A DNA stretch of 64,000 bases from Cyanophora paradoxa CCMP329 (lineage: Eukaryota > Plantae > Glaucophyta): assembly GCA_004431415.1 (NCBI GenBank), contig QPMI01000416.1, forward strand, positions 744,001 through 808,000, read 5' to 3'. A program made the translations under genes and the position numbers. Of this stretch, positions 11,070-60,862 are shown piece after piece. The notes beneath the pieces are model-generated. The model did no database searches and was not told the origin of the DNA. It saw only the letters and a list, made by a program, of their open reading frames with translations. The number at the start of each line of letters is the position of its first letter. Position 1 is the stretch's first letter.

Positions 11070-12902
11070 CCAGCGGCACTCTCCCCTCTGCATCGTTGAG
11101 CCCTGTACTCAAGCACTGCAGTTTGGCAGTATCGCGCGGTGCCGCGCCCGGCGCCGGCCCGGCGCGGCGCCGCTCCTCGTCGCGCTGGCACTTCTCGCTT
11201 GGCTCGGCGCCACCGCCGACGCCGATGCCGGCGGGGAAAGTATGCTGGAGATCGTTTCCGCACGCTTCGGGCAGCGGGAACAGCACGGGCGCGACGTGGC
11301 CGGCGTGCTCCGCGGCCTCCAGACCTGCGGTGCGCCCCGCGAGCTCGGGCGCGCCTCCCTCGCGCGACGGCGGGCCGCGCGTGCGCAGCGGGATTGCTGC
11401 TGAAGGGCTCGGACGGATGGATGTACCGGCTGTTCGAGAACGTGACGGACTTTGAGGAGTCCGGGGTAGCGGCGGAGCTCGCGGGCAGCCTGTACGAGCT
11501 TCGCGTCGACTTCGCCTTTGGCGGCGCGCTCCGACGCATCGCGCTGCCAGCGTCGGCGCCCGTCCTCGGCATCGCGGCCGTGCGGGACCCGGCGGGCGCC
11601 GAGCTGCCGTGCGGCGGCGAGAACCTCGAGCTCGAGGCCGGCGGGGCGCTCGCGCGCCCTGAGGTCGCGATCATGACCTCCAAGCGCGAGCCGAGCTACG
11701 TCCACGAGACGGTTGCGAGCGTGCTCCTCAGCGGCCTGCTCGAGCCGGGGCCGGGCGGAGACCGCGGGCGGCGGCTGCACCTCGTCTGCGGCTCGCAGGA
11801 CTGCTCCTACCTCTCCCCCTACGCCGCCCACCGCCTCGCTCGCGTCGTACCCCTCTCCGACGAGGAGCTCGCATCTCTCCACGGCCGCTCCATCCGCAAG
11901 GCCCGCCCGCAACCCCCCCCCCCCCCCCCCCCCCCCTCTCCCCGAACTTTCGCGGCAGCGGTCGAACCTGAACTACATCCGATGCCTCTCGGTGCACCCG
12001 CTGGCCACGCGGGGCGAGCCGGAGGAGGAGGACCACGCGCACTACCGTCGCCCCGGCTCCGGCCTCCTAGTTCTCGAGGACGACGTCGTGCGTACCCCCC
12101 TCCCCGCGCGCTTCTTCCCTCCTGACCACTCGTTCTCGTACCCCCCCCAGGTCCTGGAGGATCGGTTCCTGGAGCACTTCTGGGCAGCCGTGCGCGCCGC
12201 CGAGGCCCGGTACCCCTGTTACATTCTCGTTCTCTACACGAAGGTCTACCCCTCCCCCGCTCTTTTCATCAGGTACCCCTCATCCCGCTTTCGGCGCAGG
12301 CGGACCGCGGGCCACGCCTGTACAGCTTCTCTCCCGGGGCCCGCAGCTGGGCACCCGTCGACCCTGTCTCCCACTGGGTCTCTGAGCCCTCTGACTACTT
12401 CTGGGGCACCCAGGCGCGTCCCCTCCCCCGCTCTCTCCTTTTTGTACCCCTTCCCTCCCCCGAAATCTCACTCCGTAGCTACCCCAGGCGATGTACTTTC
12501 CCCCCTGCGCGCTTCTGGGGGTAGCCGGATTCTACCGTTACTTCTTCGAAAAGCCGGACACAGAATGGGACTTCCCCTACGACGCTATGGCCGACTTTTA
12601 CTCCAAGGCGCGTACCCCCCTCCTTTTTTCCCCAAGGAAGAGCGAGCCGTACCCTTCGCAGACGCGGGGGTACCCCCTCGTCGTAGCGGCCAAGTCGAGC
12701 GTGCAGGCGAGCCCGGCCCCGCTCGATCGCGGCGGCCGCGCGCGGCCTCTGACCCGCGCGCGCACGCCCGCAGCACGTTGGGATGAAGTCGACGGGTCTG
12801 TCGAGGGGTGACCACTGGGCCGCCACATGGGACCCCACGTTCGAGGCCGACGGCGTCGTCTTCGCCGGCGACGTACCCCCCCTCCAAGGACCGCAGCCCT
12901 AG
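11070..12902 (+). CDS. GT-A fold glycosyltransferase, GT54/MGAT4 (GnT-IV)-like
   Basis: Hydrophobic N-segment PLLVALALLAWLG, then VAIMTSKREPSYVHETVASVL, NLNYIRCL, LLVLEDDV (DxD-type) and SSVQHVGMKST, matching the GT54 motif order. The start codon is not resolved. Confidence 0.65.
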
Positions 12903-17815: not shown

Positions 17816-20407
17816 CTACAGGCCGGGCTCGACGGCCCAAGCGGAGAGCTCCGCGCCGGGGAACCTGCCCCTCCCCGCGTGACTCACGCCGGCGCGCGAG
17901 GGTCGCTGCGCGGGGCAGGGGTACGCGCGCGCACCAGCCGGAGAGGACCGAGCGCGCGTAGGCGGCCAGGCCCGCGCTCGCGGCCCCAATGTTGATCTGC
18001 GGGGAGGGACCTCGGGAGGCGGCGGGGGCCGCTGAGGAGAGGAGGGGTACCTTGAGGTTCAGGGAGGGGGGCAGCTTCGACGCGAACGGCGCGTACCCCA
18101 CCAGGTCGCCCTCCCCCTCCATCCCGTGGCTGCCGACGGTAGGCTTCAGATCTCTGCGGGCCGCGGCGCTGAGGGCCACCGGCCGGCTGGCTTCCGGGTC
18201 ACCTGAACGTGACGCGACCGAGGCTGGGGCAGGCCGCACACGCCGCGAGCTCCCGCGCCCCCGGCGGCCGCCGCGCGTACACGTCGTACCTGCCGCCCGC
18301 GCGCCCTCAGCGAGCGGCGCCGAGCGCGGGGTGGCGGGGGTAGGCGCGCCGGAGCTCGGAGAGTGTACCCCCGGCCACCTGGATCAAGTCCGCGAGGGCC
18401 TCCGACGCGACGTCCGCCTCCACGCCCCCCGAGTCGCTGGCGGGCGGGGGGGGGGGGGGGGGGGGGGACGTGATTCGAGGGGTGGGGGTACGGGCTCGTA
18501 GCCGCGGGCGCACCTCGTGCCGAGGCGTCCGGCCAGGACGATGGCAACGAAGCGCAGCTTGGGATCCGGGCGGGCGAGCATCTAATGGGGGGTACGTCGG
18601 CGGCCGCCGGGCGGGCGCTCGGGGACGCGCGTACCCCCTCGATCGCGAAGGAGAGGGCCCGAAAGACGGACGCGCCGCCGTCCGACTCCGGGCGCACCTG
18701 GGGCGGGGCGGGGGTGAGGACACGGGGGGGAGAATGCGAGGGGCGGGGGGGGGGGGGGAGAGGCAGGGGTGCCTGGACGAAGGCGAGGAGGGAGCAGAGG
18801 CGGGGTACGCGTGCAAAGGCGGCGGCGCGGCGGGCGTCGAGCTCGACGAGCGGCAGCGAGAGCTGCGCCAGGCGCGGCAGCGAGGCGATGGCCTCCAGCC
18901 CGACCAGCGAGATGCGCCCGAAGCCTGCCGCGGCCGTGAGGCGCGGGGGGGGGGGGGGGGGGGGGGGGGGGGGTGCGCGCACAGGCGGCGGAGATGCAAG
19001 CGATGGAGCGGCCGGCGGGCCCCGCGGCGAGCGCGGCGAATCCAGGGCCCGTCTCCTCCACCACTGCCTCCGCCTCCTCCCCTGGGCTGCGGGGGGTAAG
19101 CGAAAGAAAGGGGTGGACGGGTACGGGTGCGGCGGGGGCGGACAGGGAGCCGATGGCGAGGTCCTCGAGGTGGGCGAGCTGACCGATGGCCGCGAGGGTC
19201 GCCCCGCAGCCGCGCGCCGCCAGCGTCGCGCCCAGGGCGGCCAGGCGGGGTACAGCGCCCGCGAGCCCCCGCGCCTGCTCCGGCCCCAGCGCCATGGTGC
19301 GCGGGGGGTACAGCTCCCGAAGCGAGGGCCCGAGCGCTTCTGCGGCCGACTCGGGCGGGGGCGGGGGTGTGGAGGGCGGGCGGGGGGGTACAGGGCACCG
19401 AAGGCGGCGGACCAACGCGCCTCGGGGCGGGCGGCGGAGACGAACTGGTCGCCGTCCGTCCCGTACACGAGCGAGGCGTCGATGCTCTCCAGACGCTGCG
19501 GGCCGCTCGTTCAGCACAGCCCGCGGCGGGCGGTGGAGGGGCGGGGCGGGCGGGGCGGGCCTGGCACGGGGCGAGGGCGATGGCGGCCCGAAGGAAGATG
19601 TCCTCCGTCGTCGTCCCCGCGTCCCGAAAGGCGTCGGGATTCAGTACCCCCAGGGTGTTCTGTCCCCGCGCGTCGACGTCAGCGGGGCGCGGGGCGAAGC
19701 GGAGTGAACGGGGCGGGCCAGGAAGGTGGCCGCGGGCCAGGCGTTGCTGACGGCGAGGCGGACGGAGACGAGGGAGGCGGCGGAGGCGCGGGCGGCGGAG
19801 GCGAGGAGGCCGACGAGGCCGTGCGCGGCGAGCAGGAGCTCCCGGCCGTGCGCGAGGACGACCTGCAGGCCCATGCCCGGGCCGCCGTCCGCCTCCTCCT
19901 CCGGCGGGCCGCGGAGCTCGACGGCGAGGGAGGCCTGCGGGCCGATGAGCCCGCGGTCGATCGCCCGCCGCCAGAACTGCATGCTCCGCCGCCAGGGGCG
20001 CTGCCGAGCCGCGTCGGCTAAGCCCAGCGCGTGGCTGCGGTGCGTCGCGCTCGCACCCGCGGCGCGTCCTCGTCGTCCGTCGGCATACGCAGCAGAGGGC
20101 CGGCCAGGTTGAGCGGGCCCTCGCCCGTGTCAAATACCAGCGAGATCTGGTCCCACTGCACGCCAGGGACGAGGTCGCTGCTCCGCGTTCAGGAAGCGCC
20201 GGTGCCCAGTGATCCGCCGCGGACGCACCGAAAGCGACCGCAAACGGCGGGCAGGTGTCTGAGCGCCTCGAAGGGGTCGACGAAGGCGAAGACTCGCCGA
20301 ACGACGTCGTCGGGCATCGCATCGAACGGATTGCAGGCTGCCGCTGCAGCACTCGCGGCGCCGGCGGCGGCGGCGGATTCGCGCCGCTGACGCTTCTGCC
20401 CCCCCAT
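17816..20407 (-). CDS. F-box/LRR-like protein (multi-exon)
   Basis: NPFDAMPDDVVRRVFAFVDPFEALRHLPAVCGRFR, followed by LRR-like exons (LAHLEDLAIGSL, IASLPRLAQLSL). The last exon ends ...WAVEPGL* at 17816. Confidence 0.8.
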
Positions 20408-21351: not shown

Positions 21352-21383
<32 letters not shown>

Positions 21384-25549: not shown

Positions 25550-25900
25550 CGCAAGCCGCTGAGCTCGCAGACAGCTGCGTTACGGTTGCTGTCGCGCCAC
25601 GGTTACGCGTATACGTACGGCGCCGCCGGGCCGCTGCAGCTGATGATTGCGAGCGACGACGTCGACCTGCGCTAATGCGCTAGCCTAAAGCTGCTTCCGC
25701 TGATCGTGACTAGTACACGTATATACTATGATACTGCTTCGAATTCTGGTCGCCCCGGCCCCGGCCGCGGGCCCCGCGCGCGCGCGCGCGCCGCGGGCAG
25801 CGCCGGCGCGGGCACGCCGGGCACGGCCAGCGGCGCCAGCGCTATAGCTAGCCGGCCCGGCGCCATGCGCCAGCGCGGCGTTTAAACGTTTCAAGCCGCG
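25550..25900. repeat. Palindrome-saturated intergenic block 3
   Basis: tacgcgtatacgtacg (25604), ctgcagctg, gacgtcgac, actagtac, ttcgaattc, (cg)n, agcgctatagctagccggc, cgtttaaacgttt. Confidence 0.85.
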
Positions 25901-26058
25901 TTTGACTCCTAAAAATTGGCATGGTCACGTGGAGTGCTTACAATGCTATCGATCATTGTGACGTTGACTCTGGGATTGCTAGCCGGAGGGTTCCAGCCTC
26001 TGCGGAGCATGAATCCTTCTTTTTGCACTGCCATTGTTTGCAGAGGCCCGCTAGCGCT

Positions 26059-26095
26059 TTTTTTTTTTTGGTGAATTACCGGCCACAGCCTCTAG
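26059..26095 (-). mobile_element. 26-nt poly(A)-tailed insertion, copy 1 (CTAGAGGCTGTGGCCGGTAATTCACC-A11), 9-bp TSD
   Basis: Flanked by the direct repeat gctagcgct (26050-26058 and 26096-26104). The core is identical to the copy at 38614. Confidence 0.8.
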
Positions 26096-26370
26096 GCTAG
26101 CGCTACCGGTAACGCTGGTTTAAAATTCGGGCCGTTTCGCTCTTTGCAAAAATTGCGACTCGGCGAGTCGACGTCGACCCGGCTCGACCGGGCGCGGTGA
26201 CACCGGTGACCGGGAACTTCGCTCTTCTGCGTTTCGCTCTTCAGCAGGCCCCTGCGGAGTCCGGAGTCCGGACCACCCGTCCAGGCTCCGGTGAACTCGG
26301 AACGCGTGCGACGAACGGCACCAGTCCAGCAACGCCGGCGGCACCGCAAATCGATCCCGAAGTTCGCCCA

Positions 26371-26508: not shown

Positions 26509-26546
<38 letters not shown>

Positions 26547-28840: not shown

Positions 28841-31345
28841 ATGGCGGCGTTCATCGTTGGCGTTCCTGTTGCGGGGCGCAGCCCCGTGAGCAACCAGACG
28901 GTGTCGTTGAAGGCTGTCACAGCCGGGTCGTTCGTGGCCAAGGCTGGCAACTCGGCCGTGCCGTCGTTCACTGGTGCGGCGGCCTGCGCTAACCAGCCCA
29001 GAAGCCATGCAGAGGCCTCTAGAAACTTTGGCTCCTCGCCGGGGCTTGCGCGCGGATTCTTCAATGATTCCCATCGCAGGCCTCCGCCGCCAGACCTCGT
29101 TCGCGCCTGCGACGGAGGCTCGCCGGTCGGTCCGCCGCAGCGGTACGCCTTCTGAGCCCTTTCGCTGGCGCCCCTCGCCCTGGACCGTCGCCCTCGATTC
29201 TATCTAGCTGATTCTGCGCCGCAGCGCCGGTCGTGTTCTCGCCCGTCGCCCACCAGGAGAACAGTAATGGCGCCGCGAAGAAGCGCCAGAACCCGACGAG
29301 CGGCTCCTCGGCCAAGAAGGAGTCCAGCGCTGTGCGCTCGCGCGGCCGGGCGCGGGGCTTTGGCCCCTGAGCTCTTACCGGCGCCCCGCAGCCCGTCATT
29401 GTGACTGAGGGCGTGGAGGCGAACCTTACCGCGTCGGAGATGGCGACCCGCATCAACCGGCGGAAGACCCGCAGCGTGCGCGTCGGCAACATCTACATCG
29501 GCAGCGAGCACCCGGTGGTCGTGCAGTCGATGATCAACGAGGACACTCTCGACGTCTACGCCGCCGCCGATGCCATCCGCCGCCTCCACGAGGCCGGCTG
29601 CGAGATCGTCCGCGTTACGACCCCCAGGTCCGCCCGCTCGCTCGCCCGCAGCGCCGCTGCGCCGGCGCCGGCGGCGCGGCTGCTCACGCGGCGCGCGCGG
29701 CAGCCTGGCGCACGCCAAGGCGGTGCGACTCATCAAGGAGCGCCTGCGCGAGACGTACATGGACGTGCCCCTCGTCGCCGACGTCCACCACAACGGTCCG
29801 CGCCGCGCCCCCTCGGGGCCCGTCCCTCGGCCCGGGGCCCACGGGGCGGCACGCGCGCGCAGGCATGAACATCGCGCTGGAGGTTGCGAAGCACGTGGAC
29901 AAGGTCCGCATCAACCCCGGCCTCTACGTCTACGAGAAGCCCAGCTCGGACCGGTCCGCCCGGCCCCGCCCCGCGCCGCGCAGCGCCGCGCCTCTGCGGG
30001 CCGACGCGCGAGCAGCACGGAGTTCACGCCCGAGGAGTTCGAGAAGATCGCGGTGGAGATCCGGCAGCAGCTGGAGCCCCTCGTGACCTCGCTCCGCGAG
30101 CAGGACAAGGCCCTCCGCATCGGCGTGCGCCCGGGGCGATCCCCAGCCGGCCCGCGCGCGCCGGCCGACGCGGGGCGGGGCGGGGCCGGGCGGGGCCGGC
30201 GCAGGTGAACCACGGCTCGCTGGCGGAGCGCATGCTCTTCACGTACGGTGACACCCCCGAGGGCATGGTCGAGTCGGCCATCGAGGCGCGCCGCCCCGCG
30301 CCGCCCGTCCCGTCCCTTTCCTTCTCAATTCCCCCGCAGTTCATCAAGATCTGCGAGTCCCTCGACTTCTACAACATCATCATCTCCATGAAGGTCCTTT
30401 CCTCTCTTTCCTCTCCTTTTTTATTTCCGTTGCGAGCGGGCGGCAGGCGTCGCGCGTGCCGGTGATGCTCTCGGCGTACCGCCTGATGGCGAAGCGGATG
30501 GACGAGCTGGGCATGAACTACCCCCTGCACCTTGGCGTGACCGAGGCCGGCGACGGCGACTACGGCCGCATCAAGTCCTCCATCGGCATCGGCTCCCTGC
30601 TCGCCGACGGCCTCGGCGACACCGTGCCCGCTTGCTCTACCCTCTCTTTCGCCTTCTCGACCCGTCCGACGCCCGCCGGCGGGGCCGCAGATCCGCGTGT
30701 CGTTGACGGAGGACCCGATCAAGGAGATCCCGGTCTGCTACGCCATCCTCCAGGGCCTGGGCCTCCGGCGCACCATGGTCGAGTACATCGCCTGCCCCTC
30801 GTGCGGCCGCACCCTCTTCAACCTCGAGGACGTCCTCGCCGAGGTCCGTACCCCCCTCCCTTCTCGCCCCCCCTGCTCTGCCAGGCCGGCGCGAGCGAGC
30901 GAGCGGGCGCCGCGCAGGTCCGCAACGCGACGGCGCACCTGGTCGGCCTGAACATCGCCGTCATGGGCTGCATCGTCAACGGGCCCGGTCCGCCCCGCCC
31001 GCCCGCCCGCCCGCTCGCCGGCCGCGCCTGCGCCGGCCTCACGCGGGGCCGCAGGCGAGATGGCGGACGCGGACTACGGGTACGTGGGCAAGACGCCGGG
31101 CGTCATCTCGCTGTACCGCGGCCACGACGAGATCAAGAAGGTCCCCGAGGCGGAGGGCGTGCAGGCCCTCATCGACCTCATCAAGGCCGACGGCAAGTGG
31201 GTGCGCGCCGCCCCCGCCCTCCGCCCCGCCCCCTTCCTTCCGTCCGGGGGCCCGCTTCCCTGACGCGGCACCGGCCGGCGCGCATGGGCAGGTCGACCCG
31301 CCCGCCAAGTCCGAGGAGAAGGAGCCGGCCGCCGCCTCGGCATGA
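28841..31345 (+). CDS. ispG: Plastid-targeted 4-hydroxy-3-methylbut-2-en-1-yl diphosphate synthase (MEP pathway)
   Basis: MAAF presequence, then [70 protein letters not shown] and [23 protein letters not shown]. Confidence 0.97.
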
Positions 31346-31503
31346 GGCCCCCCGCCCCGCCCCGCGCGAGCCCCGCCCGCGCTCGCTCCCTGTACTACAG
31401 AGTATTTACACCGCCAGCACCATTTCCGCGCTCGGACGGGAGGGATTGCATGCGCGCCGGCGCGATTGGGATACATTGGATGTAAAGAAGCGCATCCTGC
31501 AGC

Positions 31504-31718
31504 TGGCCTTATGAAAGTATCTACGGTTCTTAAAATAGGACTCGCAAGCTACAGCGCGAGAAAAAATAAGCACACAGGGGGCGCAGCAGGGCGGTGGCGG
31601 GGGCCGGCTGCTCATGCGGCGGCGTCGGGCTAGACGAGCGGACAGGTGGCCTTATGAAAGTATCTACGGTTCTTAAAATAAGACTCGCAAGCTACAGCGG
31701 GCGAAAAATGAAGCACAC
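31504..31718. repeat. Direct duplication of a ~70-bp AT-rich unit (31504-31575, 31647-31718) between convergent genes
   Basis: tggccttatgaaagtatctacggttcttaaaata(g/a)gactcgcaagctacagcg occurs twice, 143 bp apart, with one mismatch in the core. Confidence 0.9.
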
Positions 31719-38470: not shown

Positions 38471-38613
38471 GCCGCTTTACAAAAAATCATTTCAAAAATG
38501 ACCGAAATAAAAAGTCACCTGATCCGGATCCGGGTCGGCCCGGCCGGAGAGTCGGAGTCATCCGGGACTCATCCCTTCGCGATCATCGGATCGAAGCCCT
38601 TTGAAGCAAATCA

Positions 38614-38646
38614 CTAGAGGCTGTGGCCGGTAATTCACCAAAAAAA
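38614..38646 (+). mobile_element. 26-nt poly(A)-tailed insertion, copy 2, 6-bp TSD
   Basis: aaatca|ctagaggctgtggccggtaattcacc-aaaaaaa|aaatca (TSD at 38608-38613 and 38647-38652). Confidence 0.75.
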
Positions 38647-38689
38647 AAATCATTAAATTATAAAAATTAAAAGTTCAGTGTTAACGTTA

Positions 38690-38864
38690 TTTTTTTTTTA
38701 AGATCTACGGTGGGCGTGCCCACTCGTAGTACACAACGAGGATACAAGTCACGGTATCGGGAATCACAGGGATTCGAAGTACAACGTAGCGGAAACAGCA
38801 GGAACCGAACCCGGGAATCCGGGAGGTCGTAGCACGACCTTATACCACTGCGCTGTCCGGCCGC
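38690..38864 (-). mobile_element. Candidate tRNA-derived SINE
   Basis: Minus strand shows an A-box-like CAGCGCAGTGG, a perfect hairpin AGGTCGT-GCT-ACGACCT, a B-box-like GGGTTCGGTTCC, a ~100-nt tail ending in hairpin CTACG(A)GTGGGC-AC-GCCCAC-CGTAG, then A10. No TSD was found. Confidence 0.55.
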
Positions 38865-39307
38865 CGGGCGGTCATGCTCAGGTGCATGCATATGCATTAT
38901 ATAATGCATATCATAGTATTTCACAGTGGAGTGTCCTTGGAGTGTGAGCTGGGTGCGAAGTACTGTACTAGGTATCAAAAACTGGACAAAAATTAAAGCA
39001 TCCGATGATCCCCCCAACGTTAACTTGGCAACTTGGGCCCGGCAGGCTCCGGGAAGCCTTCGAGGAGGAGCACTTGACTCAGTGAAGCGCCAACCTGGGC
39101 GGTTGGGCCCCAAGTACTGCTCTGAAGGAACTGCTCTGAAGGGCGTGCGGCGTGCCGCCGGGCCGCGTGGGGCGGGGGCGCGGGGGTGGGGAAGGCTCAC
39201 AGGATGCATACGAGAGGAGGGGGCCGGGGCGTGGGGCGTCGAGAAGTCGACTCGGGCCCCGGGGAATCGGCGAAGGCGGCGGTACTACGGTATACATAGC
39301 GGTTGCA

Positions 39308-42296: not shown

Positions 42297-44008
42297 ATGG
42301 AGCAGGATCAGGCGGCGGCGGCGGGCGCGTCGCTGTTGGACCTGCCCGACGACATCCTCGTTCACACCCTGCAGCTCGTCGGCTTCGCGTCTGCGTGGGC
42401 CGCGCGGCGCGCTTGCCGCCGCCTCCGCGACGCCGTGGAGCGCGGCGTGCGTGCTGGCGAGCTGCGGGCAGCGGCGGACGACCCGGCCGCGCTGGAGCTG
42501 CTGGCGGCGCTGGTGCGGGCGGGGCGCGTGCGGGCGGACGCGGTGAGCATCACGTTGGAGCAGGGACGGCGCCGGGCGACGCGCGACGCGCTGCTGCGGC
42601 TGTTCCGCGCGGCGGCGGCGGTGGTGGAGGCCTGCGCGGCCTCCGCAACCGCGGCGGAGAGCTTCGAGGCGACGCTGACGCTCAAGGACAACGTGCTGAC
42701 GGTGGACCTGTTCGAGGAGGCGCTGCGCGGCTCGCCGGAGTTCGGGCGGCTGACCGGCCTGCACCTCCCCTTGAAGCTGGAAGTCCACGAGGGGACGGCG
42801 GAGGACATCGCCGCGCGCTGCCCGCGGCTGCGGCGGCTCGGCTTCGCGCTCTCGTGGCGGTGGAGCTCGTGGTTCGGGGGCCGCATCTTCGGGCAGCTGG
42901 CGGCGCTGCCGCTCGAGGAGCTCGCCGTCGCGTGCCGCACGGACCGGCAGGCCGGCCACCTCCAGGCCCTCGTCGGCACGCCCGCCGGCGCCTCCCTCCG
43001 CCTCCTCGACCTCGGGCGAGCCGCCGGCCCCGCGCCCCGCGCCCCGCGCCCCGCCGCCTCTGCCTCCTGATCATGACGCCCGCGCGCCGCAGGGACGAGG
43101 TGTGGCTGGACGACGAGACGCGGGGCGCCCTGCTCTCCTTCCCCTGCCTCGAGCGCGTCGCCTCCAAGCTCGTCGTCCCGTGCGCCGCGCCCGCGCGCCG
43201 GCGCGCCGGCGCGCCCCGCGCTCAGACGCTCGGGCGTGGACGCACGCAGGCCGCACACAGTGGAGGCGCTGCTGGAGGGAATCGCGGGGCACGGGGCGCT
43301 GCGGGAGGTGCGCCTCGTGCTCCGAAGCCCCGACCCGAGCTTCGTGCAGTTCTTCGGGGAGGCCCTGCCCCGCTCCCGCCTCACCGACCTCCACCTCGAG
43401 CTCGACCTGACCCTCCTCCTCCACCTCGCCATCGGCGACATTCGTGCGCGCCGACTTCGACGTCGGTCGCTCGCCTGCGCCGCCCCTCTCACCGCCGGGG
43501 CCCGGCAGACTACCGCCTGTGCTCGCTGGTGCCCCTCTTCGAGGGCGCGAGGGCCGCCCTCCGCAGCCTCCGCCTCGCCCTGGGCAGGCCCCTCTCCCCC
43601 GCGGAGCTCGCGGCGCTCGCCGCCTGCGGGCCCCGCCTCGAGGCGGTCTGCCTCTCCGTTCCCCCCGAGGAGGAGGGGGACGAGGGGGGGGAAGCCGGGG
43701 AGGAAGGGGGCGACGGGGAGGCGCGCAAGGCCCGCCCCCGCCCGCCCCCGCCCGCCCCGCCCCGCCCCGCCCCGCCGCGCCCGGTCCTGACGCTGGGCTC
43801 CGCGCAGGCGACTCGCCCGCTCGCGCCGCCCGGGCGGGGGTCCCATCGACGGGGTCCCCCGCGGCGGCCCGCGCTCTCCCCCCTCGAGGAGCTCCAGCGC
43901 GCCCTCCCCGCCGCCCGCCTCGAGCTGCTCAGAGCCAAACCCCGAGCTGCACGCTTCTGCCAGCTGCTGCTGCCTGCCGATGCCTTCGAAGATCCATTCG
44001 TGCAATAA
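42297..44008 (+). CDS. F-box/LRR-like protein
   Basis: SLLDLPDDILVHTLQLVGFASAWAARRACRRLR, IAARCPRLRRLGF and LAALPLEELAV. Ends DPFVQ*. Confidence 0.8.
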
Positions 44009-52055: not shown

Positions 52056-55000
52056 ATGGAGAGCTTCAAGGGGCTCAAGGACAAGGCTCGCGCGGGCCGG
52101 CTCGCTCCCGGTCCCCGAGAAAGCCCTGAACCGCCGCCGCAGGATGGGGCGGAGGCCCCAGGCGACGAGGAGGAAGGCGCCGGCTCGCCCCGGGCCGCCT
52201 CCGACGCCGGTGCGCGTCCCCGTGCCCCCTGCGGCGCACTTTCGGGTTCCTGAACGGGCAGGGCAGGAGCCGAGGGCGCAGTAGACAGCGTACTTCGCGC
52301 CGGGGCGTGCGGCGAGGTCGAGCCGGAGTGGGGGCCGGACGGCGTGGTCCTCGTGCGCGCCCCCCGGCGCGGCCCCGAAACCTTCTGCGCGAGCTGAGCG
52401 CGCGGGCGCCTAGAAGACGGGGCGGGAGGCAGAAGGGAACAAGGCCGCGGGAAGCGGCCCGATCGCGAGGGCCAGCTTCCGCGCCCTCGCCGCGGACGAC
52501 GTGCGCGCCTGGCCTCCTCTCAGCGGGCCAGCCGCACCGCGCGCGCCAGCGCCGTCTGACGCGGGGCGGGCGGCGTGGGGCGCAGGAGGGGCGGGGCCGG
52601 GCGCGGCGGGTCTCGTTCCGGGCGGCCTCCGCCACGGGCGCCCTCCGCGTCTCCTTCAGCTGCGCCCAGCCGGTCCCCAGCGCCGGGCCCGAGGGGACGC
52701 CCAGGCCCAGGCCGGGGCCGGGGACGCCCTCCCCGCCCCCGAGGCCGCCCCGTGCGCCCTCCGGTCCTCCTCGCCCGCGCCTGCGCAGGATGACCCCGCG
52801 CGGCAGGCGCTCGGCGTGCCAGCACCGGCGGCGCCCGACGTTTGGCCGGGCGAGCTTCAGGGTGCGCCGACTCGAGACGGCCGCCGCGCCGTGGCGCGCG
52901 GGCTGACCCTCGGCGCAGTCGAGGTCCCTCCAGGAGCCGGCGCTCCGGCCCGGCGACGCCGTCTCCGCGTTCCGAGCGGGGGCGACGGAGGACGCCGCGT
53001 CGCCCCCGCAGCCGACCCCTTTCCAAGACCCGGCCCCTCCGCTGAAGTCGGACCTGGTCGCGGCGCCGGTCGGGCCGCCGGCGCATCAGTCGTCGCTGGA
53101 GGCGCCAACAATCGCGGCAGCTCAGCCGGACGCCAACGCCTGCACGCGAGCGGCGGACGACCTGCCAGAGGAGGCGGCGGCGGCGGTTTCACGGGCGGAG
53201 AAGCTGGCTTCAAAGCTGGAAACAGCGTTGGCCGAAGCGGCGGCGCAGTTGGCGTCGCTCGAGGCCTTTGCGGCCGCTGCAGCTGAGCAGGCGGATGCGG
53301 CCGAGACGCGGGCAGCGGCTGCAACTGCCACTGCAAACGAAGCAACGGCGAAGGCGGCGGAGCTGCGAGAGGCGTCGGCGGCGGCAATTTTACGAGTAAC
53401 TGAGCTGGCGTCGGAGCTGGAGGCGGCGCGGAACGAGGCGGCGGCGCAGCGGGCGTCGCTGGAGGCGTCGGCAGCCGCTGCAGCTGAAAAGGCAAGCGAA
53501 GCAGAGGCTTCCGCAGCGTCGGCGGCAGCTGTTGCAGCCAAAGCCATAGCAGAGGCGGCGGTGCTGCGAAAAGCATCAAGAGCGGCAATTGAGCGAGCCA
53601 CAGAGACAAAACAAAAGCTGCAGCTGGCGTGGGCTGAGATGATCAAGCTAACTCCATCGCTGGACGCGCTGTCGCTGGACGCGTCGGCGGCGGCGGTTTC
53701 GCGGGCCGAGGCGCTGGCGTCGGAGCTGGAGGCGGCGCGGGCCGAGGCGGCGGCGCAGCGGGCGTCGCTAGAGGCGTCGGCAGCCGCTTCAGCTGAGCAA
53801 ACAGAAGAGGCCGAGGCCCGGGCAGCGGCCGCTGTAGCCAACGCGGCCTCGGAGGCGGCGGAGCTGCGGGAGGCGTCGGCGGCGGCGGTTTCGCGGGCCG
53901 AGGCGCTGGCGTCGGAGCTGGAGGCGGCGCGGGCCGAGGCGGCGGCGCAGCGGGCGTCGCTGGAGGCGTCGGCAGCCGCTTCAGCTGAGCAAGCGGAAGA
54001 GGCCGAGGCCCGGGCTGCGGCCGCTGTAGCCAACGCGGCCTCGGAGGCGGCGGAGCTGCGGGAGGCGTCGGCGGCGGCGGTTTCGCGGGCCGAGGCGCTG
54101 GCGTCGGAGCTGGAGGCGGCGCGGGCCGAGGCGGCGGCGCAGCGGGCGTCGCTGGAGGCGTCGGCAGCCGCTTCAGCTGAGCAAGCGGAAGAGGCCGATG
54201 CCCGGGCTGCGGCCGCTGTAGCCAAGGCGGCCGCGGAGGCGGCGGAGCTGCGGGAGGCGTCGGCGGCGGCGGTTTCGCGGGCCGAGGCGCTGGCGTCGGA
54301 GCTGGAGGCGGCGCGGGCCGAGGCGGCGGCGCAGCGGGCGTCGCTAGAGGCGTCGGCAGCCGCTTCCGCTGAGCAAGCAGAAGAGGCCGAGGCCCGGGCA
54401 GCGGCCGCTGTAGTCAAGGCGGCCGCGGAGGCGGCGGAGCTGCGGGAGGCGTCGGCGGCGGCGGTTTCGCGGGCCGAGGCGCTGGCGTCGGAGCTGGAGG
54501 CGGCGCGGGCCGAGGCGGCGGCGCAGCGGGCGTCGCTGGAAGCGTCGGCAGCCGCTTCAGCGGAAGAGGCCGAGGCCCGGGCAGCGGCCGCTGTAGCCAA
54601 GGCGGCCGCGGAGGCGGCGGAGCTGCGGGAGGCGTCGGCGGCGGCGGTTTCGCGGGCCGAGGCGCTGGCGTCGGAGCTGGAGGCGGCGCGGGCCGAGGCG
54701 GCGGCGCAGCGGGCGTCGCTGGAAGCTTCGGCAGCCGCTTCAGCGGAAGAGGCCGAGGCCCGGGCAGCGGCCGCTGTAGCCAAGGCGACGGCGGAGGCGG
54801 CGGAGCTGCGGGAGGCGGCGGCGGCGGCGGTTTCGCGGGCCGAGGCGCTGGCGTCGGAGCTGGAGGCGGCGCGGGCCGAGGCGGCGGCGCAGCGGGCGTC
54901 GCTGGAGGCGTCGGCAGCCGCTTCAGCGGGAGAGGCCGAGGCGCGGGCTGCGGCCGCTGTAGCCAAGGCGGCCGCGGAGGCGGCGGAGCTGCGGGAGGCG

Positions 55001-58000
55001 TCGGCGGCGGCGGTTTCGCGGGCCGAGGCGCTGGCGTCGGAGCTGGAGGCGGCGCGGGCCGAGGCGGCGGCGCAGCGGGCGTCGCTGGAGGCGTCGGCAG
55101 CCGCTTCAGCGGAAGAGGCCGAGGCCCGGGCTGCGGCCGCTGTAGCCAAGGCGGCCGCGGAGGCGGCGGAGCTGCGGGAGGCGTCGGCGGCGGCGGTTTC
55201 GCGGGCCGAGGCGCTGGCGTCGGAGCTGGAGGCGGCGCGGGCCGAGGCGGCGGCGCAGCGGGCGTCGCTGGAAGCGTCGGCAGCCGCTTCCGCTGAGCAA
55301 GCAGAAGAGGCCGAGGCCCGGGCAGCGGCCGCTGTAGCCAAGGCGGCCGCGGAGGCGGCGGAGCTGCGGGAGGCGTCGGCGGCGGCGGTTTCGCGGGCCG
55401 AGGCGCTGGCGTCGGAGCTGGAGGCGGCGCGGGCCGAGGCGGCGGCGCAGCGGGCGTCGCTGGAAGCGTCGGCAGCCGCTTCAGCGGAAGAGGCCGAGGC
55501 CCGGGCTGCGGCCGCTGTAGCCAAGGCGGCCGCGGAGGCGGCGGAGCTGCGGGAGGCGTCGGCGGCGGCGGTTTCGCGGGCCGAGGCGCTGGCGTCGGAG
55601 CTGGAGGCGGCGCGGGCCGAGGCGGCGGCGCAGCGGGCGTCGCTGGAAGCTTCGGCAGCCGCTTCAGCGGAAGAGGCCGATGCGCGGGCAGCGGCCGCTG
55701 TAGCCAAGGCGACGGCGGAGGCGGCGGAGCTGCGGGAGGCGGCGGCGGCGGCGGTTTCGCGGGCCGAGGCGCTGGCGTCGGAGCTGGAGGCGGCGCGGGC
55801 CGAGGCGGCGGCGCAGCGGGCGTCGCTGGAGGCGTCGGCAGCCGCTTCCGCTGAGCAAGCAGAAGAGGCCGAGGCCCGGGCAGCGGCCGCTGTAGTCAAG
55901 GCGGCCGCGGAGGCGGCGGAGCTGCGGGAGGCGTCGGCGGCGGCGGTTTCGCGGGCCGAGGCGCTGGCGTCGGAGCTGGAGGCGGCGCGGGCCGAGGCGG
56001 CGGCGCAGCGGGCGTCGCTGGAAGCGTCGGCAGCCGCTTCAGCGGAAGAGGCCGAGGCCCGGGCAGCGGCCGCTGTAGCCAAGGCGGCCGCGGAGGCGGC
56101 GGAGCTGCGGGAGGCGTCGGCGGCGGCGGTTTCGCGGGCCGAGGCGCTGGCGTCGGAGCTGGAGGCGGCGCGGGCCGAGGCGGCGGCGCAGCGGGCGTCG
56201 CTGGAAGCTTCGGCAGCCGCTTCAGCGGAAGAGGCCGAGGCCCGGGCAGCGGCCGCTGTAGCCAAGGCGACGGCGGAGGCGGCGGAGCTGCGGGAGGCGG
56301 CGGCGGCGGCGGTTTCGCGGGCCGAGGCGCTGGCGTCGGAGCTGGAGGCGGCGCGGGCCGAGGCGGCGGCGCAGCGGGCGTCGCTGGAGGCGTCGGCAGC
56401 CGCTTCAGCGGGAGAGGCCGAGGCGCGGGCTGCGGCCGCTGTAGCCAAGGCGGCCGCGGAGGCGGCGGAGCTGCGGGAGGCGTCGGCGGCGGCGGTTTCG
56501 CGGGCCGAGGCGCTGGCGTCGGAGCTGGAGGCGGCGCGGGCCGAGGCGGCGGCGCAGCGGGCGTCGCTGGAGGCGTCGGCAGCCGCTTCAGCGGAAGAGG
56601 CCGAAGCCCGGGCTGCGGCCGCTGTAGCCAAGGCGGCCGCGGAGGCGGCGGAGCTGCGGGAGGCGGCGGCGGCGGCGGTTTCGCGGGCCGAGGCGCTGGC
56701 GTCGGAGCTGGAGGCGGCGCGGGCCGAGGCGGCGGCGCAGCGGGCGTCGCTGGAGGCGTCGGCAGCCGCTTCCGCTGAGCAAGCAGAAGAGGCCGAGGCC
56801 CGGGCAGCGGCCGCTGTAGCCAAGGCGGCCGCGGAGGCGGCGGAGCTGCGGGAGGCGTCGGCGGCGGCGGTTTCGCGGGCCGAGGCGCTGGCGTCGGAGC
56901 TGGAGGCGGCGCGGGCCGAGGCGGCGGCGCAGCGGGCGTCGCTAGAGGCGTCGGCAGCCGCTTCAGCGGAAGAGGCCGAGGCGCGGGCTGCGGCCGCTGT
57001 AGCCAAGGCGGCCGCGGAGGCGGCGGAGCTGCGGGAGGCGGCGGCGGCGGCGGTTTCGCGGGCCGAGGCGCTGGCGTCGGAGCTGGAGGCGGCGCGGGCC
57101 GAGGCGGCGGCGCAGCGGGCGTCGCTGGAGGCGTCGGCAGCCGCTTCAGCGGAAGAGGCCGAGGCGCGGGCTGCGGCCGCTGTAGCCAAGGCGGCCGCGG
57201 AGGCGGCGGAGCTGCGGGAGGCGTCGGCGGCGGCGGTTTCGCGGGCCGAGGCGCTGGCGTCGGAGCTGGAGGCGGCGCGGGCCGAGGCGGCGGCGCAGCG
57301 GGCGTCGCTGGAGGCGTCGGCAGCCGCTTCAGCGGGAGAGGCCGAGGCCCGGGCTGCGGCCGCTGTAGCCAAGGCGGCCGCGGAGGCGGCGGAGCTGCGG
57401 GAGGCGTCGGCGGCGGCGGTTTCGCGGGCCGAGGCGCTGGCGTCGGAGCTGGAGGCGGCGCGGAACGAGGCGGCGGCGCAGCGGGCGTCGCTGGAGGCGT
57501 CGGCAGCCGCTTCAGCGGAAGAGGCCGAGGCGCGGGCTGCGGCCGCTGTAGCCAAGGCGACGGCGGAGGCGGCGGAGCTGCGGGAGGCGGCGGCGGCGGC
57601 GGTTTTGCGGGCCGAGGCGCTGGCGTCGGAGCTGGAGGCGGCGCGGAACGAGGCGGCGGCGCAGCGGGCGTCGCTGGAGGCGTCGGCGGCCGCTTCAGCG
57701 GAAGAGGCCGAGGCGCGGGCAGCGGCCGCTGTAGCCAAGGCGGCCGCGGAGGCGGCGGAGCTGCGGGAGGCGTCGGCGGCGGCGGTTTCGCGGGCCGAGG
57801 CGCTGGCGTCGGAGCTGGAGGCGGCGCGGGCCGAGGCGGCGGCGCAGCGGGCGTCGCTGGAGGCGTCGGCAGCCGCTTCCGCTGAGCAAGCGGAAGAGGC
57901 CGATGCCCGGGCAGCGGCCGCTGTAGCCAAGGCGACGGCGGAGGCGGCGGAGCTGCGGGAGGCGTCGGCGGCGGCGGTTTCGCGGGCCGAGGCGCTGGCG

Positions 58001-60862
58001 TCGGAGCTGGAGGCGGCGCGGGCCGAGGCGGCGGCGCAGCGGGCGTCGCTGGAGGCGTCGGCAGCCGCTTCAGCGGAAGAGGCCGATGCCCGGGCAGCGG
58101 CCGCTGTAGCAAAGGCGACGGCGGAGGCGGCGGAGCTGCGGGAGGCGTCGGCGGCGGCGGTTTCGCGGGCCGAGGCGCTGGCGTCGGAGCTGGAGGCGGC
58201 GCGGGCCGAGGCGGCGGCGCAGCGGGCGTCGCTGGAGGCGTCGGCAGCCGCTTCAGCGGAAGAGGCCGAGGCCCGGGCAGCGGCCGCTGTAGCCAAGGCG
58301 ACGGCGGAGGCGGCGGAGCTGCGGGAGGCGTCGGCGGCGGCGGTTTCGCGGGCCGAGGCGCTGGCGTTGGAGCTGGAGGCGGCGCGGGCCGAGGCGGCGG
58401 CGCAGCGGGCGTCGCTGGAGGCGTCGGCAGCCGCTTCCGCTGAGCAAGCGGAAGAGGCCGATGCCCGGGCAGCGGCCGCTGTAGCCAAGGCGACGGCGGA
58501 GGCGGCGGAGCTGCGGGAGGCGTCGGCGGCGGCGGTTTCGCGGGCCGAGGCGCTGGCGTCGGAGCTGGAGGCGGCGCGGGCCGAGGCGGCGGCGCAGCGG
58601 GCGTCGCTGGAGGCGTCGGCAGCCGCTTCCGCTGAGCAAGCGGAAGAGGCCGATGCCCGGGCAGCGGCCGCTGTAGCCAAGGCGGCCGCGGAGGCGGCGG
58701 AGCTGCGGGAGGCGTCGGCGGCGGCGGTTTCGCGGGCCGAGGCGCTGGCGTCGGAGCTGGAGGCGGCGCGGGCCGAGGCGGCGGCGCAGCGGGCGTCGCT
58801 GGAGGCGTCGGCAGCCGCTTCAGCGGAAGAGGCCGAAGCCCGGGCTGCGGCCGCTGTAGCCAAGGCGACGGCGGAGGCGGCGGAGCTGCGGGAGGCGTCG
58901 GCGGCGGCGGTTTCGCGGGCCGAGGCGCTGGCGTCGGAGCTGGAGGCGGCGCGGGCCGAGGCGGCGGCGCAGCGGGCGTCGCTGGAGGCGTCGGCGGCCG
59001 CTTCAGCGGAAGAGGCCGAGGCGCGGGCAGCGGCCGCTGTAGCCAAGGCGGCCGCGGAGGCGGCGGAGCTGCGGGAGGCGTCGGCGGCGGCGGTTTCGCG
59101 GGCCGAGGCGCTGGCGTCGGAGCTGGAGGCGGCGCGGGCCGAGGCGGCGGCGCAGCGGGCGGCGCTGGAGGCGTCGGCAGCCGCTTCCGCTGAGCAAGCG
59201 GAAGAGGCCGATGCCCGGGCAGCGGCCGCTGTAGCCAAGGCGACGGTGGAGGCGGCGGAGCTGCGGGAGGCGTCGGCGGCGGCGGTTTCGCGGGCCGAGG
59301 CGCTGGCGTCGGAGCTGGAGGCGGCGCGGGCCGAGGCGGCGGCGCAGCGGGCGTCGCTGGAGGCGTCGGCAGCCGCCTCCGCTGAGCAAGCGGAAGAGGC
59401 CGAGGCCCGGGCAGCGGCCGCTGTAGCCAAGGCGACGGCGGAGGCGGCGGAGCTGCGGGAGGCGTCGGCGGCGGCGGTTTCGCGGGCCGAGGCGCTGGCG
59501 TCGGAGCTGGAGGCGGCGCGGGTCGAGGCGGCGGCGCAGCGGGCGTCGCTGGAGGCGTCGGCAGCCGCTTCAGCGGAAGAGGCCGAGGCGCGGGCAGCGG
59601 CCGCTGTAGCCAAGGCGGCCGCGGAGGCGGCGGAGCTGCGGGAGGCGTCGGCGGCGGCGGTTTCGCGGGCCGAGGCGCTGGCGTCGGAGCTGGAGGCGGC
59701 GCGGGCCGAGGCGGCGGCGCAGCGTCCCGCGATGCGGACGGAAGCAACGCAGACGGAGCTCGATGACGCTCGGCGATTGCAAGCGTCTGACGAGGGACGT
59801 CTGCTTGCGGTCCTTCGACTTGAGATCGCGAGCCTCAGGGCCGATCTCGCGACGCTTTGGGGGCCGCCCCGCGAGGCGGCCGGTGCGGGGTGCGAGTGCG
59901 GGTGCGGGGCAGTGCGGGGCGCGGCGGACGGCGTGCTCCGCTCGCTCGCCCTCCTCGAGTCCCGCCTCTCGAGCCTCGCCCCCGTGGCCGAGGTCGACGC
60001 GGCGCCGTGTTCCGCCGGCGCAGGCCGCGAGGCGGCGCGCCGGCGTGGGAAGCGTCGAGGGCATGCGCGGGACACCGCCCCGCCGCCCCCGCCGGATTTG
60101 GAGATCGCCGCCGAGTTCGTCGTCGACCACCCTGAGACGGAAGTCGGCCCAGCGTGCATCGCACACCGGCCGGCGGCGGCGGAAGCGGAGCTGGCGGCGG
60201 CCACGGCGCCCGCCGGCAGCCCGCTGCCGAGCCGGCGCGAGGCGTTCGCGGGAGCAGAACTGACAGGCTCGGTGGAGTCTCAGCACGAGTCGGCCCACTC
60301 GACGGAGCCGGCCGCGGAGTGTGTGCACGCAGAGGCTGCGCATGCGGCGACTGCGGAGGCGGGGGTCGCCCGGCCGGTCGCCGGCGCGCTGGAGATGCTG
60401 GAGGCCGAGGGGCCGCGCGGCCCCCGAGTCGCCGGCCTCCTCGTCGCGGCCGGCGGACCGCAAGAGGCGGAGGCGGCGGGAGAGCTCGAGGGCAAATTCG
60501 AGCCGGTCTCAGAGGAGGAAGGGTGGCCCCTCGGCGTGGACGGGGCGGACAAGATGGCGGAGGCAGCGGCTGGGGAGGAGGGCGCGCGGCGCTTCGCGGC
60601 GGGGGTTCTGGGGCGGGCGGCGGCGCCGCGCTTCCCCGCGGGGGCGGGCGGCCGGCTCGCCCTCTTCGACTCCTGGTGGCTCACCGACCTTGAGTTCCGG
60701 CCCCGCTCGCGGCCCCCGCGGGGGCCGGCCCCCGAGGCGGACCCGTGGTGGATGGCGGAGGGCCCCTTCCGCCCCGCGGCGGCGGCAGGCGGGGCGGGGG
60801 GGCGGGGCGAGGGCCTCGCCGGCCTCCGCTCCCTCCTCGCCTGGTCCGCCCTCGCCCTCTAG
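52056..60862 (+). CDS. Giant Ala/Glu-rich tandem-repeat alpha-helical (coiled-coil-like) protein; 5' exons uncertain
   Basis: A long final exon runs from ~52919 and is open to the stop at 60862. It carries 61/64-aa repeats (ASAAAVSRAEALASELEAARAEAAAQRASLEASAAASAE(QAE)EAEARAAAAVAKAAAEAAELRE), with variation mainly at synonymous positions. Confidence 0.8.
53680..59725 (+). repeat. Coding minisatellite, 183/192-bp units, about 32-33 copies
   Basis: Near-identical units that differ by a 9-bp indel (QAE) and a few SNPs. Confidence 0.95.

Follow-up and report, generated by a model that had tools for sequence, protein, structure and literature searches.

Two identical 26-nt poly(A)-tailed inserts in Cyanophora paradoxa, candidate retroposed 3′ ends of a longer RNA

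Introduction

The closest described systems to the inserts reported here are the 5′-truncated copies left by LINEs, the SINEs and other non-autonomous retroposons, and the cellular RNAs that are mobilised in trans. The last of these include processed pseudogenes, U6/L1 chimeras and orphan 3′ transductions, and they arise since the LINE enzyme copies any A-tailed RNA. For LINE insertions, three types of 5′ junction have been described, of which direct joining is one (PMC4245944). Among SINEs, one report describes Platy-1, at ~100 bp, as the shortest known in primates (PMC4864456).

Here we analyze two copies of a much shorter poly(A)-tailed unit found in DNA of Cyanophora paradoxa CCMP329. All coordinates refer to the window, by which we mean the whole 64,000-nt stretch of DNA that was analyzed. 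A first-pass annotation of the same DNA had proposed that both copies were made by target-primed reverse transcription (TPRT) from a defined, tiny RNA template.

Results

The 26-nt unit, CTAGAGGCTGTGGCCGGTAATTCACC, is present in exactly two copies with 0 mismatches when both strands of the 64-kb window are searched, and no further copies were found in the window at ≤3 mismatches. As a control, 100 dinucleotide-preserving shuffles gave 0 matches to the 26-mer with ≤3 mismatches. The two copies are in opposite orientation. At site 1, where the unit is on the minus strand, the plus-strand order is a left target-site duplication (TSD) copy gctagcgct (26050-26058), a T-run (26058-26069), the reverse complement of the 26-mer (26070-26095, 0 mismatches) and a right TSD copy gctagcgct (26096-26104). 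The last t of the left copy is common to the T-run, which counts 12 T when position 26058 is included, and the minus-strand poly(A) tail proper occupies 26059-26069. Read in element sense, site 1 is ...accggt AGCGCTAGC 26-mer A11 AGCGCTAGC gggcc..., and one base is ambiguous with the tail, such that the site can be described either by a 9-bp TSD with A11 or by an 8-bp TSD with A12. At site 2, where the unit is on the plus strand, the 5′ TSD copy aaatca (38608-38613) is followed by a unit identical to that of site 1 (38614-38639, 0 mismatches), an A10 tail (38640-38649) and the 3′ TSD copy aaatca (38647-38652), which overlaps the tail. In element sense this reads ...gaagc AAATCA 26-mer A7 AAATCA ttaaa.... 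The last three A of the tail are common to the 3′ copy, and with these three bases of the 6-bp TSD ambiguous, its independent evidence is tca only. The TSD copies themselves are unstranded.

These coordinates, and the TSDs of 9 and 6 bp, are those given by the first-pass annotation, with the qualification at each site that bases are shared with the tail. Its statement that both copies begin at exactly the same base also held upon inspection. The start base of both copies is the same C, referred to as C1 herein, and there are no extra bases at either 5′ junction. The base immediately upstream of the junction differs between the copies (c versus a).

The tails and duplications are rarely matched by chance. 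Runs of ≥8 A or T number only three in the window, and two of them are the tails of the 26-mer. The A-run after each unit is pure, with 11-12 A at site 1 and 10 A at site 2, and in both cases the tail abuts a TSD copy. For the TSDs we used a null of 200,000 random 30-40-nt “inserts” placed in this repeat-rich window, which makes it a generous one. Flanking repeats of ≥9 bp were observed for 0.18% of the random inserts and of ≥6 bp for 2.6%, giving a joint probability of ~5e-5 for the pair of 9-bp and 6-bp TSDs; their lengths are therefore variable and above chance. In the sense orientation the first base of the TSD is A at both sites, directly after T or C. Lastly, a comparison within the window found the flanks of the two sites to be unique and mutually unrelated, and no paralogous empty (pre-insertion) site was found in the 64 kb.

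The variable TSD length, the A-tail and the A-initial TSDs fit endonuclease-dependent TPRT. Together with the unrelated, unique flanks, they support the earlier reading of these features as a TPRT signature, and it is well supported that both inserts were retroposed via RNA. A DNA transposase is disfavored, as the TSDs differ in length and no terminal inverted repeats are present. Since the units are identical and the tails pure, we consider the copies to be young. A T-tailed reading of the element was rejected, as its T-run would fall at the 5′ end.

The window has a GC content of 71.7%, with 2-kb stretches reaching about 80%, and both inserts are located in rare AT-rich islands, where GC within 50 nt falls to 48% around site 1 and to 33% around site 2. 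Judged from the sequence, both inserts appear to be non-coding. Each copy is crossed by an antisense-frame ORF reading FFLVNYRPQPL; a protein word search with the 59-aa ORF across copy 1 returned no candidate from a collection that probably contains no such ORFs. Pfam analysis of ten ORFs near the sites yielded only GcpE and F-box, both distant from the inserts. The former belongs to a GcpE/IspG (HMB-PP synthase) gene on the plus strand at 29570-31514, whose exons are split by introns and of which one ORF piece matched PF04551 at E = 3.8e-23. The latter is an apparently intronless plus-strand ORF of 257 aa at 42297-43070, with an N-terminal PF00646 match (E = 7.5e-5) and a GC3 of 95%, which is typical for coding sequence.

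Other features of the window were noted along the way. The 64 kb contains eleven pure homopolymers of G or C (12-33 nt long), for instance at 11913-11936, 18945-18973, 21352-21382 and 26513-26545; the one made of 33 G is 420 bp away from site 1. Long G/C homopolymers are easily assembled at the wrong length and can fold into G-quadruplexes. A tandem array at 53677-59724 comprises 32.5 copies of a 183-bp unit (61 codons) with 95% matches; at about 80% GC and with a strong skew of G over C, it is probably a coding repeat. In the intergenic stretch near site 1, GCTAGC-type palindromes are recurrent. One plus-strand sequence there, gcgctagcCTAaAG... at 25678-25705, resembles the site 1 junction (agcgctagcCTAGAG...) on the opposite strand. 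We considered its gcgctagcCTA portion (25678-25690) as a relative of the junction and set it aside, since the resemblance extends no further and is probably due to chance.

Close to site 2 we found a SINE-like element of about 180 nt on the minus strand (38690-38880). Its A10 tail (38690-38699) is the third of the A or T runs of ≥8 in the window and lies 40 bp from site 2, on the other strand. The element has an A-box-like cAGCGCAGTGG and a B-box-like GGTTCGgTTCC, and its strong 3′ hairpin, CTACGaGTGGGCacGCCCACCGTAG, which stops 5 nt short of the tail, has a folding energy of -15 kcal/mol (z -2.3). No clear TSD was found for it, neither ARAGORN nor Rfam called a tRNA, and it has no second copy in the window. 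Kinship of the 26-mer with this element was rejected, the alignment being no better than that of shuffles. Two A-tailed inserts within 50 bp of one another at an AT-rich spot fit an endonuclease that favors AT-rich targets, and the neighbor, with its A10 tail and hairpin, is an instance at this locus of A-tail retroposition and of a hairpin-bearing tail.

The 26-nt unit itself is featureless by the measures we applied. Its fold is no better than that of shuffles, with z of -0.26 when the tail is included and +0.36 when it is not. The unit has no pol III A or B box and no match by ARAGORN or Rfam. More broadly, no Rfam family reached its gathering score anywhere in the window, and around site 2 none was found up to E 10. 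No self-cleaving motif (hammerhead, HDV-like or other) was detected at or beside the unit by Rfam or by the fold test. A ribozyme-cleaved or Penelope-like origin, which had been raised as one source of the unit, thus finds no support in the window; a ribozyme may lie in a parent beyond it. Two further identities were rejected: a tRNA 3′ end with CCA, for which the T-arm positions do not fit, and a self-sustaining SINE, for which the 26-nt unit is too short, unstructured and promoter-less.

Searches for a source were likewise negative. The window contains no relatives, source gene, or truncated or decayed copies of the unit, with no recurring k-mer ≥11 and no diverged copy at ≤9 mismatches in 32 nt. 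It also contains no longer element ending in the 26-mer, no LINE RT motif in any of six frames, and no SL RNA gene in which the unit is followed by a splice donor. As to trans-splicing, nine papers mention Cyanophora together with “spliced leader”, and as far as their titles and abstract openings show, none is about trans-splicing in Cyanophora. A 21-nt core of the unit gave 0 matches to metagenome, prokaryote-genome and viral contigs, a set without eukaryote genomes that is uninformative on copy number. The 26-mer was also absent from the 8.4 million literature texts searched and from plasmids (best E = 2), and the adapter or primer origin that the annotation had named as a way for its reading to fail is therefore negative as far as these searches reach.

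We next turn to the shared 5′ end. The first-pass annotation had argued that identical 5′ ends speak against random truncation. The inference is sound, and its limit is the sample, as 2/2 copies share one end and two copies are too few to judge scatter. For a second insertion to end at the same base, the chance is ~1e-4 to 1e-2, whatever smooth distribution the truncation points follow. Given 2/2 identical ends and the lack of longer copies in 64 kb, the fraction of the family's insertions expected to end at C1 is at least about 22% (one-sided 95%). Because the upstream junction bases differ (c, a), microhomology at one truncation point cannot explain both ends. Resting on two copies as it does, a fixed 5′ end is likely, and it is very probable that either the template or the copying reaction sets the 5′ limit. 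The copy density, 2 per 64 kb, has a Poisson 95% range of 0.24-7.2 per 64 kb, and the high copy number previously suggested only extrapolates this figure.

Discussion

Our best explanation, to which we give about an even chance of being correct, is that the inserts are two independent, recent TPRT insertions of the 3′-terminal piece of a longer poly(A)+ transcript, with a fixed 5′ limit. Given the A-initial TSDs in element sense, a LINE endonuclease would have nicked the bottom strand and left a 3′ T, and this T would have served as primer on the A-tail of an RNA that has the unit as its final 26 nt. Synthesis of the cDNA would then have stopped both times at the base that the two copies are seen to share. 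Cutting of the second strand 9 and 6 bp away would account for the observed TSDs, and joining of the cDNA end would have been direct, as the junctions without extra bases attest. We infer that the template was most likely the tail of a resident LINE or of an RT-less retroposon, the last ~30 nt of which would be recognized by the enzyme. Mobilization, in cis or in trans, would have fallen to a LINE of this genome that uses A-tails. As for what fixed the 5′ limit, the RNA may have been cleaved or processed, or the enzyme may have been halted each time at the same obstacle. A stable hairpin immediately 5′ of C1 would be one such obstacle, although its presence in the parent is pure conjecture.

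Several observations count against the tail of a longer parent. The copies number only two, the window has no longer element that ends in the 26-mer, and an RT motif is likewise missing from it. Moreover, if a LINE tail were copied with an occasional stop, a mix with longer copies would be expected, yet 2/2 copies have the 26-nt form. The evidence in the window does not separate the parent-tail explanation from its main rival, a discrete tiny RNA.

This rival, the preferred reading of the first-pass annotation, is that the copies are “nano-retroposons”, in which a 26-nt polyadenylated RNA, discrete, abundant and with a fixed 5′ end of its own, serves LINE machinery time and again as a template in trans, giving many identical copies. 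Candidates for such an RNA would be a host small RNA, a 3′ product of Dicer, RNase Z or a ribozyme, or a TSS-proximal polyadenylated transcript of a master locus. The shared start base, the direct joins and the differing upstream bases (c, a) are all as a complete small template would leave them, as are the presence of two copies with no longer one in 64 kb, and the identical units and pure tails that mark the copies as young. However, no source gene, promoter or structure is visible in the window, and a 26-nt unit cannot carry its own promoter, so its copies would be dead on arrival. The protein word search with the 59-aa ORF, which found no other carrier of the peptide, weighs weakly on the same side. 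On balance we regard a discrete tiny RNA as possible but rather unlikely.

A third explanation holds that a LINE or SINE tail was 5′-truncated at random in the ordinary way and that the two copies share an endpoint by coincidence. LINE copies most commonly end up severely 5′-truncated, and direct 5′ joining is a known pathway (PMC4245944). Against this, a second endpoint at the same base has a chance of only ~1e-4 to 1e-2, and no family member with a different end is found in the window, which makes coincidence a distinctly improbable account. Lastly, an artefact (adapter, primer or vector) or a non-retro insertion (DNA transposon or MITE, or filler DNA at breaks), which the short, identical sequence in opposite orientations might suggest, is very improbable given that each copy has its own TSD within unique contiguous sequence where an adapter would carry none, that an oligo(dT)-adapter would be in the wrong orientation (the T-run is 5′ of the complement, not 3′ of the adapter), that no match was found in literature text, plasmids (best E = 2) or viral, metagenome and prokaryote contigs, and that the unequal TSD lengths and absent terminal inverted repeats do not suit a transposon or MITE.

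What the inserts mean depends on how the rest of the family ends. If the tiny-RNA reading were true, identical copies of 26 nt + A(n) with one start base would number in the hundreds to thousands across the genome, and these would constitute the shortest retroposon family known. They would also provide a natural read-out of the minimal template for a LINE RT and of the RNA processing that makes it. If most genomic copies start at C1, it would follow that a template of 26 nt is enough for a LINE enzyme to carry integration through, and the shared end would point to a mappable RNA cleavage event or to an enzyme block. If instead a ladder of 5′ ends leads into a LINE, the inserts would reflect routine truncation and hold little interest. 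In both cases they attest, as clean and young markers, to ongoing A-tail retroposition into the rare AT-rich islands of a very GC-rich genome.

Compared with 5′-truncated LINE copies made by L1-type TPRT, the inserts are alike in their A-tail, their variable and A-initial TSDs, their AT-rich targets and their direct 5′ joining (PMC4245944). The endpoints of L1-type truncated copies normally scatter, whereas here 2/2 stop at one base, only 26 nt away from the tail. In length, the 26-nt unit is ~1/4 of Platy-1 (~100 bp; PMC4864456). Like SINEs and other non-autonomous retroposons, it is dispersed, has a tail and TSDs and would borrow LINE machinery; unlike SINEs, it has no pol III head or any other promoter. 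Set beside the cellular RNAs mobilized in trans, a 26-nt poly(A)+ RNA would be far shorter than any described template known to us; the likeness is that an RNA which the LINE enzyme copies all the way through leaves a fixed 5′ end.
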